Sequence record: OR142618.1
Reading direction: 5' to 3' (one strand)
DNA: 64,000 nt
The position numbers were made by a program, and so were the translations under genes. Shown here piece after piece: positions 21,444-59,062 of this stretch (positions are counted from its first letter, which is position 1; each line of letters opens with the position of its first letter). The notes beneath the pieces were generated by a model. The model made no database searches and was not told the DNA's origin. It saw only the letters and a list, made by a program, of their open reading frames with translations.

Positions 21444-21456
21444 TAAAACTGTACAT

Positions 21457-21483
21457 AAAAAGGGATGCATTGCATCCCTTTTT
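21457..21483 (+). terminator. Intrinsic terminator after rIIB
   Basis: AAAAAGGGATGC-ATT-GCATCCCTTTTT. Confidence 0.85.
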
Positions 21484-21526
21484 ATTTTATTATAAAATAT
21501 GTTACTATCCTTTAATGGTATAAAAT

Positions 21527-23548
21527 ATGAAAAATTATTTGTTAACTGTACCTGTCAATTCTAATGTAGATTATACTAAACTAGATATACACGATTTTGT
21601 TCCTGCAATAAAAGAATTAACAACTAGATTATTTTATAACACAGGTGTAACACTTCAAAAAGAAACTATTTTGTTTAATGATTTGGTAGTATCCGAAGAT
21701 GCTAGTCGATTAGCATTTATTAATAGCATTTTGCATAATCTATTAAATACCTGCTCTACTACTGAGTTAGAAAATATTGCAGACGAGTGTGATACTATTT
21801 GCACAGAATACTATAATAATTCTAGAATCGCATATTCTGAAAGAGAATATAATGCATATAAAAATATAAAAAATAATGAATCGTATTTTTCGAGTCTAAA
21901 ATATTATGAACAAAAATATGTGATTGATGCCATAGAATATTACGAAGAAGAATCTGATATTAATTTCTCGCATGATACAAAAATATACCTATCATCTTTA
22001 TATTCAAAACTTAATAAAGCACAGCAGAATTTTTCTAATAATATAATAAAACATACTGCAAAAAACAGGTATTACTTTGAACACGATTTCCAAGTTGAAG
22101 GTATACCAGATAACATAAAAGATATAATGCGGGAGAATGCAAGGGCAGACGGTCATGAATCTGGATATGTAGCTACAACTGAACACTACATCTACACAGC
22201 TATAATGCAATATTGTTCGTACGAGTATACTAGAAAAACAATGTTAGAAGCTTTTTATGTAGCTAGTAACGGCGAATATAGCAATACAACTAATATAACA
22301 GATATTGTATCTATTAAATCCGAAATAGCAAAATTGTTTGGGTTTAGTACGTTTGCAGAAAAATCATTAAAGCATAAAATGGCAAAAACACCCGATAATG
22401 TATTTTCTGTATTAAATAAATTGAAAGACTTAGTAGTAGATAAAGCATTAGAAGAAGAAAAAGAACTTTTAACTTTCGCTAAATCTAAAGGATACCAACG
22501 ACCTTCTGTCCGCGCCGCTGACAGAAATTATTATTCTACTATGAGATTAAAAGAAGAATATAATTTAGACAAAAAGGTTATAGAAGAGTATTATACATAT
22601 GCCGGTGTTCTTCCTTGTATATATGGTGTTATAAAAAAACTTTTTGATGTTACATTTGTAGAAGACCCTAATGCATCTGTGTGGCATGAAGATGTTAAAT
22701 GCTATAAGGTATTCGAAGATAGCAAGCATATTGCATATATTTTTATAGATCCGTTTTCTAGGAACGGAAAACAATCCGGGGCATGGATGAATGGTATTAT
22801 TAAAAGGGATTTTGCTTATAATACTACTCTACCGGTTGCAGTAATAGTGACTAATCTGTCAAAAACATCTATTACGTTAGATGATGTACGTACACTCTTG
22901 CATGAATTTGGTCATGCATTACACCATGTACTTACTAAAGTAGAATTTCCTAATTATAATGGAATTTCTGTAGAATGGGATGCAGTAGAATTGCCGAGCC
23001 AGTTATTGGAAAATTGGATTAATGATAAAGAGCTTTTAATTGAAATGTCGTCTCATTATTCTACAAAAGAAAAAATTCCAGAATATATAATTGATAACTG
23101 GTTGGCTATAGATAATTATATGGCTGCGTCTTCGTTAAGAACACAGTTATTATATTCATTAGTAGATATGAAAATTTTTAATAGCAATGCAAAGACAGAT
23201 AAAGATTGTATAGAAATTTTTAATGAAGTAGCAAAAGATTTAAAATTAAACACAGAAGATAATCCGTTTATGCATTTGTTTTTATATTCGTTTTCTCATA
23301 TATTTTCCGGAGGATATACAGCAGGTTATTATAGCTATTTGTGGGCAGAAATTATGTCAAGTGATGTTTATTTAGAATTTAAAAATAAAGGAATGTATAA
23401 TATAGAATTTGCTAATAAAATTAAAAAAGATATTCTATATGCAGGTTCTATTAATGACTTTGATGTAATGTATAGAACATTAATGGGTAGAGATCCTGAC
23501 CCAGAATCTCTGCTAATAGTTAGGGGATTGCAGAATAGCAAAAAATAA
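21527..23548 (+). CDS. M3-family oligopeptidase (OpdA/PrlC-like)
   Basis: LLHEFGHALHH, VEWDAVELPSQLLENW, FSHIFSGGYTAGYYSYLWAE, LMGRDPDPESLL. Confidence 0.93.
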   Translation: MKNYLLTVPVNSNVDYTKLDIHDFVPAIKELTTRLFYNTGVTLQKETILFNDLVVSEDASRLAFINSILHNLLNTCSTTELENIADECDTICTEYYNNSRIAYSEREYNAYKNIKNNESYFSSLKYYEQKYVIDAIEYYEEESDINFSHDTKIYLSSLYSKLNKAQQNFSNNIIKHTAKNRYYFEHDFQVEGIPDNIKDIMRENARADGHESGYVATTEHYIYTAIMQYCSYEYTRKTMLEAFYVASNGEYSNTTNITDIVSIKSEIAKLFGFSTFAEKSLKHKMAKTPDNVFSVLNKLKDLVVDKALEEEKELLTFAKSKGYQRPSVRAADRNYYSTMRLKEEYNLDKKVIEEYYTYAGVLPCIYGVIKKLFDVTFVEDPNASVWHEDVKCYKVFEDSKHIAYIFIDPFSRNGKQSGAWMNGIIKRDFAYNTTLPVAVIVTNLSKTSITLDDVRTLLHEFGHALHHVLTKVEFPNYNGISVEWDAVELPSQLLENWINDKELLIEMSSHYSTKEKIPEYIIDNWLAIDNYMAASSLRTQLLYSLVDMKIFNSNAKTDKDCIEIFNEVAKDLKLNTEDNPFMHLFLYSFSHIFSGGYTAGYYSYLWAEIMSSDVYLEFKNKGMYNIEFANKIKKDILYAGSINDFDVMYRTLMGRDPDPESLLIVRGLQNSKK

Positions 23549-23639
23549 TAAATTTTGCTACATATATAAAAAGCTATGTAACGCTATGCTATTTGGCTTT
23601 TGTTGCATTTTATAGCACAAAAACCCCATAAAAATAGCC

Positions 23640-23695: not shown

Positions 23696-23992
23696 ATGAA
23701 CATTCATTTATCTTTTAAGGAACAACTTTCTAAGCTAATTGATGAAAACATAAATAAATACCCCGATGCTATAGATTGGATAGTATCTCAAATGGCTTTA
23801 ATAGATATTGAATCTAAAAAGACAAAAGCAGAATCTATTATGGAAGCTCTTATAGGTGATACTGAATTTTTTAATAACCCTATAGAACAGGGTGGAAGTA
23901 ATAAAGATTTTATAGTGTGGTATGTAACTAAATATAATTGTACTACTAAATACGCTATAGAACGGTTACTTCATTATTGTAAACAGAATTAG
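23696..23992 (+). CDS. Hypothetical protein (98 aa)
   Basis: AAGGGA RBS downstream of the promoter. Confidence 0.65.
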   Translation: MNIHLSFKEQLSKLIDENINKYPDAIDWIVSQMALIDIESKKTKAESIMEALIGDTEFFNNPIEQGGSNKDFIVWYVTKYNCTTKYAIERLLHYCKQN

Positions 23993-24107
23993 CCCTTAGG
24001 ACCGCCAAATGTTTTGGCTTAAGGCGCACCGGTGCTGTATCGGAGCTTAGTGATTCGCTACCACAAAAGCATAAGCAGCTAGGAGACTTAAAACGTCTCC
24101 TATTTTT
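23992..24107 (+). ncRNA. Candidate structured RNA ending in an intrinsic terminator
   Basis: Stems CCTTAG/TTAAGG, GCCAAA/TTTGGC, CCGGT/ATCGG, GCTTA/TAAGC; terminator TAGGAGAC/GTCTCCTA + T5. Confidence 0.55.
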
Positions 24108-24128
24108 ATATATACAGGAGTAAAGTAT

Positions 24129-24314
24129 ATGAATAGCGATTATGCCTCTATGTTTATAGTAATATTTGCCATATTAGTTGTGTTTATTTGTAAACCGACA
24201 ACATTTAATGAGCCTAAAAACACCATCGATACAAACAAAAGCAATGTAGCGAACGACAGTATTCCACTTACAGGAAACATTTCTAGAACACCGGGTATAG
24301 GTACAGGATTATGA
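24129..24314 (+). CDS. Small membrane-anchored hypothetical protein (61 aa)
   Basis: AGGAG RBS; N-terminal hydrophobic helix. Confidence 0.65.
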   Translation: MNSDYASMFIVIFAILVVFICKPTTFNEPKNTIDTNKSNVANDSIPLTGNISRTPGIGTGL

Positions 24315-24463
24315 AAAAGAAAAACCCAATCGAACGCAATCCAGTTGCACATCATGTAAACACATTTAACAAACCTAAAGTAGAAAAAGACAAGACAAAA
24401 TACTCTAGGAAACAAAAACACAGGACTAGGAATAGTCCTGATTTTTTATGTATAATATATTGA
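24311..24463 (+). CDS. Small basic ArfA-like peptide (50 aa), absent from the ORF track
   Basis: MKKKNPIERNPVAHHVNTFNKPKVEKDKTKYSRKQKHRTRNSPDFLCIIY*; AGGA RBS; ATGA overlap with the upstream gene. Confidence 0.6.
   Translation: MKKKNPIERNPVAHHVNTFNKPKVEKDKTKYSRKQKHRTRNSPDFLCIIY
24421..24447 (+). terminator. Intrinsic terminator inside the ArfA-like ORF
   Basis: CAGGACTA-GGAA-TAGTCCTG-A-TTTTTT, ending 14 nt before the TGA. Confidence 0.85.
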
Positions 24464-24489
24464 CAGATATTGTATTTGGAATATACAAT
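24460..24489 (+). promoter_or_regulatory. sigma70-like promoter
   Basis: TTGACA-N18-TACAAT. Confidence 0.7.
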
Positions 24490-24511
24490 ATGCATAACAA
24501 GGAGTGTTATT

Positions 24512-25630
24512 GTGGCAAAAACGAAACATATTTTTAAAGTTCCAGATTATTCTCTTTTAAAATTAGATTCTAAGACATATACTAAGGATTATAGGAATGC
24601 AATTTGGTATTTGCATTATGAAGCATCTGCTGCTACTCTTAAATCTGCAACACTAAAATGGATTAAAAATAATACATCTTATGATGTAAAAGATTTATCT
24701 TCGTTGAGTGATTCTGATTTTTCTATTATCGGAAAATATTGTACTATACTAAATGCCGGCGGACAACTTCCTAGTCATGCTAATTTCGTCGAATCACACA
24801 TAGACAAGATATTTCAATCTATTAAAAAAGAAGAAATTACAGAAATTGTCGAAGAACCAGAACCTAAAATAGAGCATGATAGTTGCAAAGTTAAAAAAAT
24901 AAGTATACAGGATAGAATTAAGAGCCAGGCATATAAAGCTTGCGGAGAAATTGAAGGATTAATAGATCAATTTTATAGTAATCCTAGTGAGTTTGTAGTA
25001 TCCCAGCAAGAAATAGAATCCTTATTTAAAAAATCAGAAATAAAATCCCATCATGTAAAATATATTACTGAAATATATAGCACTAATAAAAAAGAATTAG
25101 AGGAGCTTTCGGCAGGAAAATCCGAACAGTTAAACGAAGGTTATAATTTTTTAACTAAACGGGATATAAACAAAGCCATAAAGCTATTTAATTTAATTAT
25201 AGAAACTGCGTCTAGTAGTAAAATAGTTACTGTTAAAAAACGAGCTAAAAAACAAAAGCCATTGGATATTTCTAAATTAGTTAAATCATTTAAATATTTA
25301 GAAAAAAGCACAGATCTTAACTTAGAAAGTATTAATCCTGTCCATATTGTTGGTGCAAAAGAAGTATGGGTGTTTAATACAAAAAGTAGAAAGTTAGGAA
25401 AATATATTGCTTTAGACACTACAGGTCTATCAATAAAAGGAACTACTATAACTAATTTTTCTGAAAAAAGTATAGAAAAAACTATTCGTAAACCAGAAGA
25501 ATATTTTAAAAATATTAAGAAAATTTCTAAAAAGGCAAAAGAAAAATTATTTGTAGATACTAAATCTGTCGAAACTAAACTAAAAGGAAGAACAAACGAG
25601 CATTGTATCATTCTTGAGGTTATAAAATAA
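24512..25630 (+). CDS. Hypothetical myophage protein (GTG start after AGGAG)
   Basis: SIQDRI...GEIEG.ID and SINP..IVGAKEVWVFNTKSRKLGKY blocks of a type seen in T4-like phages; function unknown. Confidence 0.7.
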   Translation: MAKTKHIFKVPDYSLLKLDSKTYTKDYRNAIWYLHYEASAATLKSATLKWIKNNTSYDVKDLSSLSDSDFSIIGKYCTILNAGGQLPSHANFVESHIDKIFQSIKKEEITEIVEEPEPKIEHDSCKVKKISIQDRIKSQAYKACGEIEGLIDQFYSNPSEFVVSQQEIESLFKKSEIKSHHVKYITEIYSTNKKELEELSAGKSEQLNEGYNFLTKRDINKAIKLFNLIIETASSSKIVTVKKRAKKQKPLDISKLVKSFKYLEKSTDLNLESINPVHIVGAKEVWVFNTKSRKLGKYIALDTTGLSIKGTTITNFSEKSIEKTIRKPEEYFKNIKKISKKAKEKLFVDTKSVETKLKGRTNEHCIILEVIK

Positions 25631-27067: not shown

Positions 27068-27091
27068 AAATAGGGGCAATGCCCCTATTTT
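27068..27091 (+). terminator. Symmetric terminator hairpin
   Basis: AAATAGGGGC-AAT-GCCCCTATTT. Confidence 0.75.
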
Positions 27092-29922: not shown

Positions 29923-31539
29923 ATGTCTATTGTATGTAAAATTTGTAATAAATCATTTCCTAGTATGATTACAAGTACACATCTAAAAACACATAACATC
30001 ACTACTGCAGAATACAAAGATCTTTATGGAAAATATTCTCTTGTATCAGATGAATATAGATCAAAGCGGTCAGAACAGTCATCTGGCATTAATAATCCTA
30101 ATTATGGAAATAAATGGTCAGACAGCATGAAAGAATCTATGTCTAATAAAAAATCTGGAACTATTCCGTGGAATAAAGGCATAGAGTTACACGATACTAC
30201 TATGTATGTGAAATCTGCAGAACAGAGAGAACTAAAGTACAAAGAAGGGATACTAACTAGGAAATCATATGTCAGAACTGTAGAAATAAATAAAAAAATT
30301 TCTGATAGTGTGAAGAAGTATGCTGCAGAAAATAAAGAAGAAGTAAAACAGAGAAGTGCCAAAGCAAAAGGTACATATAGTACAAAGAAAACGTTAGGGT
30401 TAGTGCAAATACGAAAAGGATATAAGTTAACCAAATCACATAAAGAAATAGCTATACAAACATTAAACAATTATAGGGCTTCTAAAATAGCTGAATCTAA
30501 TAAACAAATAGAAAGTAATATATCTCTTGCAAATCTAACATTATTAAATGACATAAATGAAAACAGCTTAGTGTTAAGGTGTAATATATGTAATAATGAA
30601 TGTTCTTTTACAAAACAATATTTTAGAGCTAGTAAATTTAAAATAGAATTATGTCCTGTGTGTTATCCTAGAAATAGTAATAGATCTGAAAAAGAAAAAG
30701 AATTAGAATATTTTATAACAAGTTTAGGTATTTCATGTATAAATTCTGCACGTATAAACAATAAAGAAATAGATATATTTTGTAAAGAATTAAATATTGG
30801 ATTTGAATTTAACGGATTATACTGGCATAGTGAGGATGTGTTAGAGTATTCTGGGTACAGTAAAACAAAAGATTACGAAAAGAAAATATTTTTTAGAGAT
30901 AAAGGAATTAGATTAATTCAAATATTTGAAGATGAGTGGGACTTAAAGCAAGATATAGTAAAGAGTAGAATAAGAGCTATATTAGGAAAAACAGAACACA
31001 AAATATATGCAAGGAAATGTACTGTTAAAGAAATAAATTCTAAAGTTGCAAATGATTTTGTAGAAAAAACACATTTACAAGGTAAAGGTAGAGCAAATGT
31101 AAGATTAGGGTTGTATTATAACAATGAACTAGTTTCTGTAATGACATTTTTAAATAAAGATATTACTAATAAAACATCGAGCTGTCAGATAAATCGTTTT
31201 AGTGTAAAACATAATACATCTATCCCCGGCGCCGCGGGAAAATTATTTGCTTACTATATAAATAACTATAATCCATCTAGTGTTATTTCGTATGCAGATT
31301 CTCGCTGGTCTGACGGTAATTTATATGAACAGCTAGGATTTAAATTAGATAAACAGACACTCCCTAATTACTGGTATATAAAAGATAATGATCTTAAAAG
31401 ATATCATAGATACAATTTTAGAAAAGATAAGTTGCCCGAAACTTTACTAACAGAAAAAGAATATATGGATAGTTTGGGATGGAATAGAATATGGGATTCG
31501 GGATCTACTAAATGGGTTTGGACAAATAAAGGGGCATAA
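29923..31539 (+). mobile_element. Free-standing Hef-like homing endonuclease between sheath and tube genes
   Basis: N-terminal C2H2 finger (CKIC...HLKTH); PWNKG NUMOD-like motif; EIDIF...IGFEFNGLYWHS; LIQIFEDEW; C-terminal RIWDSG. Confidence 0.8.
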
Positions 31540-31552
31540 TGCCCCTTTATTT
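31524..31552 (+). terminator. Symmetric terminator with the stop codon as its loop
   Basis: AAATAAAGGGGCA-TAA-TGCCCCTTTATTT. Confidence 0.85.
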
Positions 31553-37352: not shown

Positions 37353-37383
37353 AAATAAAAGGGTGTTATGCACCCTTTTATTT
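37353..37383 (+). terminator. Symmetric terminator
   Basis: AAATAAAAGGGTG-TTATG-CACCCTTTTATTT. Confidence 0.85.
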
Positions 37384-37394
37384 TTTATTTAGAT

Positions 37395-42202: not shown

Positions 42203-43189
42203 ATGGCTTCTCTTGCTGAACTACGTCAAAAATTAAAAGATCAAGAAACAAAACGTGGCACAAAATCATCTGGCAGTGCAGATAAAAGTAATTTCCCATT
42301 CTGGGACATGAATGAAAACGACAGTGCTACTGTAAGATTTCTTCCTGATGCAAACACTGATAATACCTTTTTCTGGGTAGAAAAACAACAAATTAAAATT
42401 CCATTTAGTGGCATTGTAGGTATGAATAGTAAACCTACAGTTGTTACTGTACCGTGTGTAGAAATGTGGGGGGAATCTTGCCCTATTCATCAAGAAATCC
42501 GTCCATGGTTTAAAGATCCTTCGTTAGAGAAATTAGCGCGTACTTATTGGAAGAAACGTTCTTATATTTTCCAAGGACTTGTACGTAAGTCACCTCTTGT
42601 AGAACAAGAACTACCAGAGAATCCTATTCGCAAATTCACATTCGGAAGTCAGATTTTTAATCTAGTTAAATCGTCTCTATTAGACCCCGAAATGGAAAAC
42701 ATTCCCACTGATTATTTAAATGGTACTGATTTCCAGATAACTAAATTAATGAAGGGCCAATATGCCGATTACGCTACATCTAAATGGGCAAGGAAAGAAT
42801 CTTCGTTAACTGAAGAAGAATTCCAAGCAATCCAAACATATGGTCTGTATGATTTAAGTAAATTTTTACCTGCTAAACCTGATGCAGAAGCATTAGCTGC
42901 TATATTCGAGATGTTCGAAGAATCAGTAGAAGGTAAAGAATATGATCCGCAGCGTTGGGGGAAATACTATCGCCCTTACGGGGTTGAAGTTCCTACTAAT
43001 ACTTCCGTAAGTGTACCTGTATCTAAACCAGAACCTAAGACTACGGTATCTAGTTCTTCAGTTATGGAAGACGATAACGATGATCTTCCTTGGGAAGATA
43101 CTACTAAACCTGTAGAGCCTGTCAAATCTGCTTCTAATGCGCAAGATATAATTGCGCTCATCCGCGCCCGCCAAAACAGCGGCAACTAA
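42203..43189 (+). CDS. Single-stranded DNA-binding protein (T4 gp32-like)
   Basis: ATVRFLPD...FFWVE; CVEMWGESCPI; FQITKLMKGQYADYATSKW; acidic C-terminal tail. Confidence 0.92.
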   Translation: MASLAELRQKLKDQETKRGTKSSGSADKSNFPFWDMNENDSATVRFLPDANTDNTFFWVEKQQIKIPFSGIVGMNSKPTVVTVPCVEMWGESCPIHQEIRPWFKDPSLEKLARTYWKKRSYIFQGLVRKSPLVEQELPENPIRKFTFGSQIFNLVKSSLLDPEMENIPTDYLNGTDFQITKLMKGQYADYATSKWARKESSLTEEEFQAIQTYGLYDLSKFLPAKPDAEALAAIFEMFEESVEGKEYDPQRWGKYYRPYGVEVPTNTSVSVPVSKPEPKTTVSSSSVMEDDNDDLPWEDTTKPVEPVKSASNAQDIIALIRARQNSGN

Positions 43190-43194
43190 ATAGG

Positions 43195-43222
43195 GAGAGG
43201 GGATCGCTGATCCCCTCTCTTT
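43195..43222 (+). terminator. Hairpin / terminator after gp32
   Basis: GAGAGGGGATC-GCT-GATCCCCTCTC-TTT. Confidence 0.75.
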
Positions 43223-43295
43223 AATATAACCTAAAATAGCCAAAAAGTACAACTACAATGTTGGAAGGACGGCAGTATTATAAAAAGGACATTTT

Positions 43296-59023: not shown

Positions 59024-59062
59024 AAAAATCCCGTTACTGCTTGACGCAATAACGGGATTTTT
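59024..59062 (+). terminator. Symmetric terminator with a -35 element in its loop
   Basis: AAAAATCCCGTTA...TAACGGGATTTTT; TTGACG at 59041-46; TGc-TATTAT at 59062-59070. Confidence 0.75.

Follow-up and report, generated by a model that had tools for sequence, protein, structure and literature searches.

Results and Discussion

Organization of the Locus

The window analysed here, that is, the whole stretch of 64,000 nucleotides from sequence record OR142618.1, carries a gene of 50 codons on the + strand at 24311-24463 (ATG at 24311, TGA at 24461-24463), which is the equivalent of gp293 of phage PA5oct and encodes a member of the DUF7230 family. Between positions 23600 and 25700 the DNA is 100% identical to that of the Pseudomonas phage Callisto and 98.8-99.5% identical to that of PA5oct, MIJ3 and other Wroclawvirus jumbo phages. 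In related records the DUF7230 open reading frame is flanked by an oligopeptidase A gene on one side and by the head-tail adaptor and tail sheath genes on the other. The preliminary description of this DNA had noted the frame as absent from its ORF track; in public records it is annotated, being recorded as "hypothetical protein" in all 11 matching related phage genomes.

The gene is the second of a two-gene unit. Ahead of this unit, a GC-richer structured intergenic stretch (23993-24107) is closed by a terminator-like hairpin with a T5 run at 24080-24107 on the + strand. Rfam searches yielded no RNA family, neither for the whole window at gathering thresholds nor for 23900-24520 at E ≤ 1, and ARAGORN detected no tRNA or tmRNA within the window. 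The first gene of the unit (24129-24314, + strand) encodes 61 amino acids with a hydrophobic N-terminus and is preceded by an AGGAG ribosome binding site 8 nt ahead of its ATG; it is annotated as "hypothetical" in the relatives and matched no Pfam or PHROG family. Its stop codon overlaps the ATG of the DUF7230 gene (ATGA), and the only AGGA in front of the latter lies just 2 nt from the start codon, making translational coupling the likelier mode of entry. Translation of the DUF7230 gene is thus likely to be coupled to that of the upstream frame. On the downstream side, a promoter-like site with 11 of 12 consensus positions was found at 24460-24489 on the + strand (TTGACA at 24460-24465, an 18-nt spacer and TACAAT). 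The TGA of the DUF7230 gene falls within the -35 hexamer TTGACA of this predicted promoter, which belongs to a separate transcription unit with the next gene (24512-25630, + strand; 372 aa, phrog_11903, no assigned function).

The DUF7230 Protein Family

The encoded protein matched Pfam DUF7230 (PF23876) over residues 8-41 with 59.7 bits at a gathering cut-off of 27 (E = 3e-16), and phrog_6310 with E = 7e-12, so that the 50-residue basic frame proposed earlier proved to be a real gene. All 89 aligned relatives matched the same Pfam family. Functional annotation is absent from PF23876 as well as from PHROG families 6310, 2701, 1359 and 4586, and in the literature searched DUF7230 is unmentioned; no paper or database name found there ties it to ribosome rescue. 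Ten related phage records encode exactly the same protein (100% identity), and an eleventh encodes one with 95.7% identity over residues 1-47.

A word-indexed protein search with the single sequence of 50 amino acids returned the self-match only. An exhaustive search of 1.84 billion representative proteins yielded 25 matches at E ≤ 1e-3, and a profile search retrieved 2173 clusters, all named ones being "hypothetical" or "DUF7230 family protein". Two long repetitive representative matches (P0013 and P0019) were dropped as low-complexity artefacts. By tblastn, members of the family turned up in 351 records of Vibrio phages, 138 of Pseudomonas phages, 4 of Salmonella phages and 1 of an Erwinia phage, 494 in all. 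Family alignments define a conserved core, N-P-V-A-K-H...F-N-K-P-x-V-x-R-D-K-T-K-Y-x-R-K-x-K-H, which corresponds to residues 8-37 of the window protein (24332-24421, + strand). Within this core no member departs from D27, Y31 and R33, and at least 90% retain K30 and K34. Beyond the KH dipeptide neither length nor sequence is conserved.

AlphaFold2 produced an extended, non-globular model of the window protein (pLDDT 72, pTM 0.21), with which Foldseek found no match in the PDB; the model is uninformative and does not constitute evidence against any function. A peptide that becomes ordered only when bound to its target would be expected to lack a globular fold, as would any short peptide.

A Terminator-Type Hairpin within the Reading Frame

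Terminator scanning and folding revealed a hairpin within the frame at 24421-24440 (+ strand), CAGGACTA-GGAA-TAGTCCTG, whose 8-bp stem includes 4 G-C pairs and is capped by a GGAA loop. An A and a U tract encoded by T6 (24442-24447, + strand) come next. The first hairpin base, 24421, is the last base of the His-37 codon, which places the structure directly after the segment Y-S-R-K-Q-K-H. The hairpin is the centroid fold with about -11 to -12.2 kcal/mol (z = -3.5), and none of 200 shuffled sequences was as stable. With its G+C-rich stem, short loop and adjoining U tract, the segment 24421-24447 has the features of an intrinsic terminator, and no in-frame stop codon occurs ahead of 24461. The two central observations of the preliminary description, an intrinsic terminator that precedes the TGA and a hydrophobic tail (FLCIIY) encoded behind it, are thus borne out. 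A conserved coding gene with a terminator-type hairpin and U tract in frame immediately behind its basic core is demonstrated by these comparisons.

Based on the usual geometry of intrinsic terminators, the transcript is predicted to end at about 24447-24450, that is, in codon 46 and 11-14 nt upstream of the stop codon. Since no in-frame stop precedes 24461, a transcript ending there would be stop-less, and the peptide would end with F45 or L46. We consider it fairly probable that the transcript of the window gene is indeed stop-less. The remaining part of the frame, the read-through tail and stop (24448-24463, + strand), is not conserved in the family according to the family alignment and the comparison within the phage clade. 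Phage phi30-3 has a single length difference, a frameshifting one, in the region of the tail; its tail is longer and different and its ORF is annotated with 75 aa, indicating that the tail past the terminator is under no constraint at the protein level. Across six Wroclawvirus genomes neither the hairpin nor the promoter hexamers vary, and consequently no covariation can be read within the phage clade. The hairpin of the window gene is modest (8 bp), and any read-through transcript would yield the full product of 50 amino acids.

Eight compact canonical terminators were read by hand on the + strand of the window (21456, 24080, 24421, 27071, 31527, 37356, 43195 and 59029). The one at 24421 is the only one that is read through by the upstream open reading frame; for six of the seven others the upstream gene stops before or at the hairpin, and no ORF lies in the 60 nt upstream of the one at 24080. 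A programmed -1 frameshift on the U tract was considered and rejected, as the hairpin lies upstream of the slippery run and not downstream, and the other frames lack conservation.

Position of the Stop Codon in Viral and Metagenomic Relatives

Relatives of the gene were gathered from phage records, IMG/VR and metagenomes, giving 161 loci, of which 122 were non-redundant. A hairpin was scored at the end of the core (Y-x-R-K-x-K-H) when it reached -9.5 kcal/mol or lower with at least 8 pairs and started between -12 and +15 nt from the core end. Such a stable hairpin was detected in 24 of the 122 relatives. The stop codon lies beyond the hairpin in 19 of these and inside it in five, and no case has it in front. 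As a control, 212 positions picked at random within long ORFs were scored likewise, 13 of which (6%) had a comparable hairpin. In 82 of the 122 loci no hairpin was present and the tail did not exceed 12 residues, the stop typically following 2-10 codons after KH; a further 13 had no hairpin and a longer tail, and 3 were unscorable owing to their position near a contig end. Pakpunavirus phages, which infect the same host, belong to the kind with a plain stop and no hairpin, and in PAK_P1 this stop overlaps the next gene. Gating by tmRNA can therefore not be a family-wide property, given the 82 hairpin-less loci with an early stop. The preliminary description had named the arrangement that would speak against it, homologues that stop right after KH with the hairpin located downstream. 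Early stops are indeed common, but in loci that carry no hairpin, whereas a stop in front of a hairpin was not encountered among the 24.

For comparison with ordinary genes, a uniform terminator pipeline was applied to the family and to other genes on the same contigs and in the window. For the family it returned 9 read-through cases against 6 in which the stop precedes the terminator or lies within it, and for the other genes 2 against 19 (Fisher one-sided p = 0.0019). With a strict terminator detector the difference was marginal at small numbers (p = 0.06), and a first, lenient detector gave many weak false calls. Thresholds of these home-made detectors alter the counts but not the direction, and we rely on the uniform pipeline and on the count of hairpins only. 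Metagenomic members with long tails (L080-L083) show a strong hairpin with U tract 0-8 nt past the KH codon, and their ORFs continue for 20-60 nt beyond the hairpin to the stop; five members possess stems of 16-22 bp without a U tract. The hairpin sequences are unrelated across subgroups, amounting to about ten different ones, which indicates that the arrangement was gained or kept repeatedly.

Chromosomal Copies in Methylococcales

Bacterial members of the family are stand-alone chromosomal genes, the example from Methylococcaceae adjoining mnmG-rsmG-parA-parB. When one genome per species was scanned, this subgroup was found in at least 80 species of Methylococcales, including members of Methylomonas, Methylobacter, Methylovulum, Methylomarinum, Methyloglobulus and Crenothrix. 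In the bacterial examples inspected by contig context, the hairpin measures about 19-20 bp or more and is located 6-12 nt after KH. Hairpins with 12 or more pairs (median 25) occur in 55 of the 62 evaluable loci; in 52 of these the stop codon comes after the hairpin, and in the other 3 it lies inside. A clear U tract accompanies the hairpin in 10 of the 55, many stems being near-perfect over 20-27 bp.

In this subgroup the pairing itself could be analysed. RNAalifold predicted 24 pairs from 60 distinct sequences, 23 of them with compensatory changes. Of the cells in the pair count, 92.4% were paired, compared to 74.3% after shuffling and to 40-52% when the partner was slid by 1-3 columns; cells with double changes numbered 258 compared to 65 in shuffles, and none of 500 shuffles reached any of the measures. 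The residues encoded by the stem vary as the RNA demands (E-P-F-S-I..., E-A-S-P-M-V..., E-V-F-P-I...). Since the amino acids encoded by the stem follow the RNA pairing, the constraint acts on the RNA. Together with the stop positions in the hairpin-bearing relatives and the uniform terminator comparison, this covariation upholds, for those homologues that carry a hairpin at all, the earlier expectation of an in-frame terminator in front of the stop codon.

Similarity to ArfA

ArfA and BrfA are both made from stop-less mRNAs (PMC8012679, PMC10107115) and share a KH motif (PMC8012679). Residues 31-48 of ArfA occupy the mRNA tunnel of the ribosome, and truncation at Asn47 is tolerated (PMC5378476). 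The E. coli arfA gene, taken from NC_000913.3 (accession given in PMC7538156), served as positive control and displayed an in-frame hairpin of about 21 bp located about 19 nt past KH with the stop codon beyond it. BLASTP of the window protein against E. coli ArfA as a single comparison revealed 9 identities in 22 positions over Y-x-R-K-x-K-H and its flanks (E = 0.002). Y31, R33, K34, K36 and H37 align with ArfA Y39, R41, K42, K44 and H45, and the KGKGS motif is absent, D-K-T-K-Y standing opposite ArfA K-G-K-G-S-Y with a gap of three residues. Both the resemblance of this segment to E. coli ArfA and the missing GKGS had been pointed out before and were reproduced here.

Profile comparison by hhalign, using a shallow ArfA profile of enterobacterial sequences only, aligned 24 columns with P = 0.0018 (probability 14.6%) and, in a longer alignment to the same shallow profile, 36 collinear columns covering ArfA residues 11-50 with P = 0.0047 (probability 7.5%). 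When the columns of the ArfA profile were shuffled 300 times, the scores averaged 8.4 (sd 1.9, max 17.0) and never attained the observed 17.5; with DUF7230 profiles shuffled in the same way, 3 of 300 did. Neither the window protein nor the sets of 24 and 89 relatives matched the Pfam ArfA family (PF03889) at E ≤ 10, NCBIfam gave no ArfA match for the window protein, and searches of the PDB by sequence and profiles, which covered the ribosome complexes of ArfA and BrfA (6SZS), returned nothing at E ≤ 10. The likeness to ArfA thus exceeds chance for matched composition at about the 1% level, a weak signal with which common descent is not established. What the sequences show is a weak but collinear alignment of the conserved basic half of DUF7230 with that part of ArfA which occupies a stalled ribosome's vacant mRNA tunnel. 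We provisionally file DUF7230 as a peptide of the ArfA/BrfA type, putatively tmRNA-gated, outside the ArfA family. Literature searches for phage-encoded or ArfA-like rescue factors retrieved nothing relevant, and one lead to an "ArfA homolog" (PMC10680825) was discarded as ArfA is unmentioned in its current version.

Comparison with Known Rescue Systems

Several properties link DUF7230 with ArfA (YhdL; PF03889), which is found in Gamma- and Betaproteobacteria. Both are small and basic with Y-x-R-K-x-K-H near the C-terminus, and further conserved residues of DUF7230 (N, F, V and K) match collinearly. As in arfA, the hairpin-bearing DUF7230 copies have an in-frame stem-loop a few codons after KH and a stop only farther downstream, the read-through tail is non-conserved and often hydrophobic, and the gene occurs as a stand-alone chromosomal gene in Gammaproteobacteria. 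In contrast to ArfA proteins, DUF7230 has no significant HMMER match to that family and carries D-K-T-K, which is three residues shorter, in place of KGKGS. Its N-terminal half is characterized by N-P-V-A-K-H, whereas ArfA has a hydrophobic block (A-L-L-H-D-P-L-F); the core comprises about 37 residues compared to about 47, and most viral copies lack the hairpin.

In Bacillus subtilis, the ORF of BrfA (YqkK) contains a rho-independent terminator ahead of its stop codon; expression of the peptide is repressed by tmRNA, its KH motif sits in the mRNA channel, and it is thought to be independent in origin from ArfA (PMC8012679, PMC6881298). BrfA, likened here by description only, provides a precedent for an unrelated family of the same design, though unlike DUF7230 it is confined to the Bacillus subtilis group. 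Across more than 15,000 bacterial genomes, ArfA was reported in 2024 only from Gammaproteobacteria, some Betaproteobacteria and the B. subtilis group (PMC11633108). ArfT of Francisella tularensis, a member of the KGG-repeat family with about 40 residues, brings RF1 or RF2 to stop-less ribosomes (PMC6299226, PMC6514570). Also compared by description, ArfT differs from DUF7230 with its putative gating in that non-stop gating is not described in the excerpts of these reports; no DUF7230 member matched the KGG-repeat Pfam models.

Proposed Function and Alternative Explanations

Considering these data, we propose the following model for the window phage, in which the gene encodes a short, basic and unstructured peptide that would work in the manner of ArfA or BrfA. 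Most transcripts of the gene would end at about 24447-24450 and would be stop-less. Ribosomes would then reach the mRNA's 3′ end, and tmRNA-SmpB would tag the product of about 45-46 residues for degradation, so that the peptide would accumulate only once trans-translation is saturated. Such saturation would be expected when infection or host defence nucleases generate many truncated mRNAs. The free peptide may then enter ribosomes with an empty tunnel via its KH-ending tail, recruit a release factor and free the ribosomes. The hairpin-less viral and metagenomic homologues would make the same peptide constitutively. Binding of the peptide to the ribosomal tunnel appears slightly more likely than not. 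Recruitment of a release factor, deduced from architecture and motif, is plausible but somewhat doubtful. The complete chain, namely an ArfA/BrfA-like tunnel-binding peptide made from a stop-less transcript and gated by tmRNA, has in our judgement an even chance of being correct. The original suggestion of an ArfA-like non-stop rescue peptide is accordingly retained in part: the recurrent in-frame hairpin and the common KH segment speak for it, whereas homology to ArfA is not established and gating does not extend to the whole family.

The arrangement might also be incidental. The gene could be simply the last of its unit, coding for a small basic protein of an ordinary kind (a nucleic-acid binder, for example), and a terminator could have drifted into its dispensable 3′ end; the product would be made by read-through or owing to inefficient termination and would have nothing to do with ribosome rescue. 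In compact phage genomes signals often overlap, and here the stop codon even lies inside the -35 box of the next promoter. This explanation is also consistent with the hairpin-less state of most homologues, with an ArfA similarity that is weak and falls in a lysine-rich segment, and with the marginal result of the one strict terminator comparison (p = 0.06). It is difficult to reconcile with the finding that in 0 of 24 relatives the stop is upstream of the core-end hairpin, whereas 19 of 21 other genes on the same contigs stop before or inside their terminator, as do the genes at the six other + strand terminators of the window with an ORF within 60 nt upstream. The recurrence of the arrangement with about ten different, mutually unrelated hairpins and covariation across a bacterial order likewise argue against drift; moreover, a gene that had lost its stop by drifting would leave its product open to tmRNA tagging, a change that selection should disfavour. 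We regard an incidental overlap as rather unlikely, yet deserving of consideration.

Two further explanations were considered. The hairpin might act chiefly at the RNA level, as an RNase III site, an mRNA stabiliser or the source of a 3′-derived small RNA, with the overlap of the ORF being secondary. The near-perfect bacterial stems of 20-27 bp with a clear U tract in only 10 of 55 would fit such a role, and the E. coli record annotates an arfA-derived small RNA over the same hairpin. However, in arfA a single stem serves as an RNase III site as well as a terminator (PMC10107115), making an RNA-level role compatible with the rescue model, and it leaves unexplained why the hairpin always starts a few bases from the KH codon and never with an intervening stop. 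As the principal explanation, though not one that excludes the others, this appears very improbable. Alternatively, a peptide of the same gated, tunnel-binding design might work without a release factor, blocking or parking ribosomes or competing with tmRNA-SmpB, and thus be a translation modulator or an anti-rescue factor that redirects the translation capacity of the host. Only the tunnel-binding half of DUF7230 is ArfA-like, the N-terminal half (N-P-V-A-K-H...F-N-K-P) having no significant likeness to the RF2-binding region, and the basic tails of SmpB, ArfB and ArfA share the tunnel with different outcomes (PMC5378476). Nevertheless, a single-copy chromosomal gene with gating of the arfA type in at least 80 species of Methylococcales is more easily explained by back-up rescue, and the longer hhalign alignment extends collinearly into the N-terminal half, including a near-invariant Asn. 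A tunnel binder with an outcome of this other kind is in our opinion unlikely.

Conclusions

Back-up rescue with the help of a release factor remains our preferred explanation for the window gene and its relatives. At the level of the family we suggest, as a tentative proposal that falls short of an even chance, that DUF7230 represents an unrecognised family of release-factor-dependent rescue peptides, being either an ArfA branch that has diverged very far or the product of a third, independent origin besides ArfA and BrfA. The family may serve as tmRNA-gated back-up in the methanotrophic Gammaproteobacteria (Methylococcales) and may have been acquired widely by lytic phages that infect Pseudomonas, Vibrio, Erwinia and Salmonella. 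Reviews consider it probable that further back-up rescue families exist, and ArfA, BrfA and ArfT all came from genetic screens (PMC8012679). Back-up rescue factors are tiny and fast-evolving and are not findable by sequence similarity. A stop-less in-frame hairpin following a KH-ending basic core is a purely computational signature, which here picks out a family of more than 2000 clusters. If the proposal is true, Methylococcales would possess a candidate alternative rescue system, and phages would encode ribosome-rescue factors of a kind absent from the literature searched. Many lytic phages would then bear a rescue-type peptide that keeps ribosomes available amid truncated mRNAs, which would have a bearing on the ways in which phages withstand mRNA-cleaving defences and on the reasons for the importance of tmRNA in phage growth.

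Variant arrangements of the DUF7230 gene

Besides the arrangement in the window, where the 50-codon DUF7230 ORF (24311-24463, + strand) carries an in-frame hairpin, intermediate arrangements were detected in three relatives, namely L004:701-847 from the Erwinia jumbo phage Hallingskeid and the loci L022 and L102. In all three the hairpin lies at the same place after the KH that ends the conserved core, with the stop codon located within the loop or the first bases of the U-tract. Judged from the sequence, terminated transcripts of these loci would thus end at the stop codon or within a few bases of it. Three IMG/VR contigs (L021, L058 and L075) encode long acidic or hydrophilic extensions of 38-97 residues after the core, without a hairpin, and may represent the basic DUF7230 core fused to another domain.

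Pfam searches with 89 DUF7230 members yielded weak matches for 17 of them to the C-terminal half of DUF6291 (PF19808), a second family of unknown function, with a best E value of 0.0012. By this similarity, DUF6291 may be a relative of DUF7230 with an N-terminal extension.

Transcriptional context

The region of the two small genes lies just downstream of a gene for an M3-type oligopeptidase A (21527-23548, + strand; 673 aa, HEFGH motif), which itself follows rIIA and rIIB. This protein, annotated as prlC in relatives, is an unusual phage enzyme.

A 115-nt intergenic stretch (23993-24107, + strand) has a G+C content above that of its surroundings. Folding predicted two or three stems, with a z-score of only -1.7, and no Rfam match was obtained. 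The stretch may encode a small RNA or serve as a leader. Its 3′ end is formed by a terminator-like hairpin followed by T5 (24080-24107, + strand), only 22 nt from the start of the 61-aa ORF at 24129. As this leaves no room for a promoter, transcription of the 24129 ORF and the DUF7230 ORF may depend on read-through of this terminator. At the other end, the promoter for the next gene (24512-25630, + strand; phrog_11903, function unknown) matches the consensus at 11 of 12 positions (24460-24489, + strand), and its −35 hexamer, TTGACA, includes the DUF7230 stop codon.

Other terminator-like elements were found in the window. Six compact terminators built on palindromes such as TAAAAGGG...CCCTTTTA (21456-21488, 27068-27091, 31527-31552, 37353-37386, 43188-43233 and 59024-59062) look bidirectional, since they score on both strands; on the + strand, the stop of the upstream gene is positioned before the hairpin or at its start. 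Three near-identical hairpin-forming elements of ~45 nt (…GATATATTAGCTTTTGTCGTTGCTAAGTCATATGC…), spaced by ~190 nt and each followed by a T run, are located at 1044-1470 on the − strand and together constitute a repeated terminator-like or regulatory motif.

Annotation in phage genomes

The DUF7230 ORF is unannotated in Pseudomonas phage Boevelstad (L005:647-820), where a 159-aa CDS in another frame overlaps it, and in Vibrio phage 234P1 (L006:689-856), where no CDS covers the stretch. The DUF7230 family is probably under-annotated across phage genomes.
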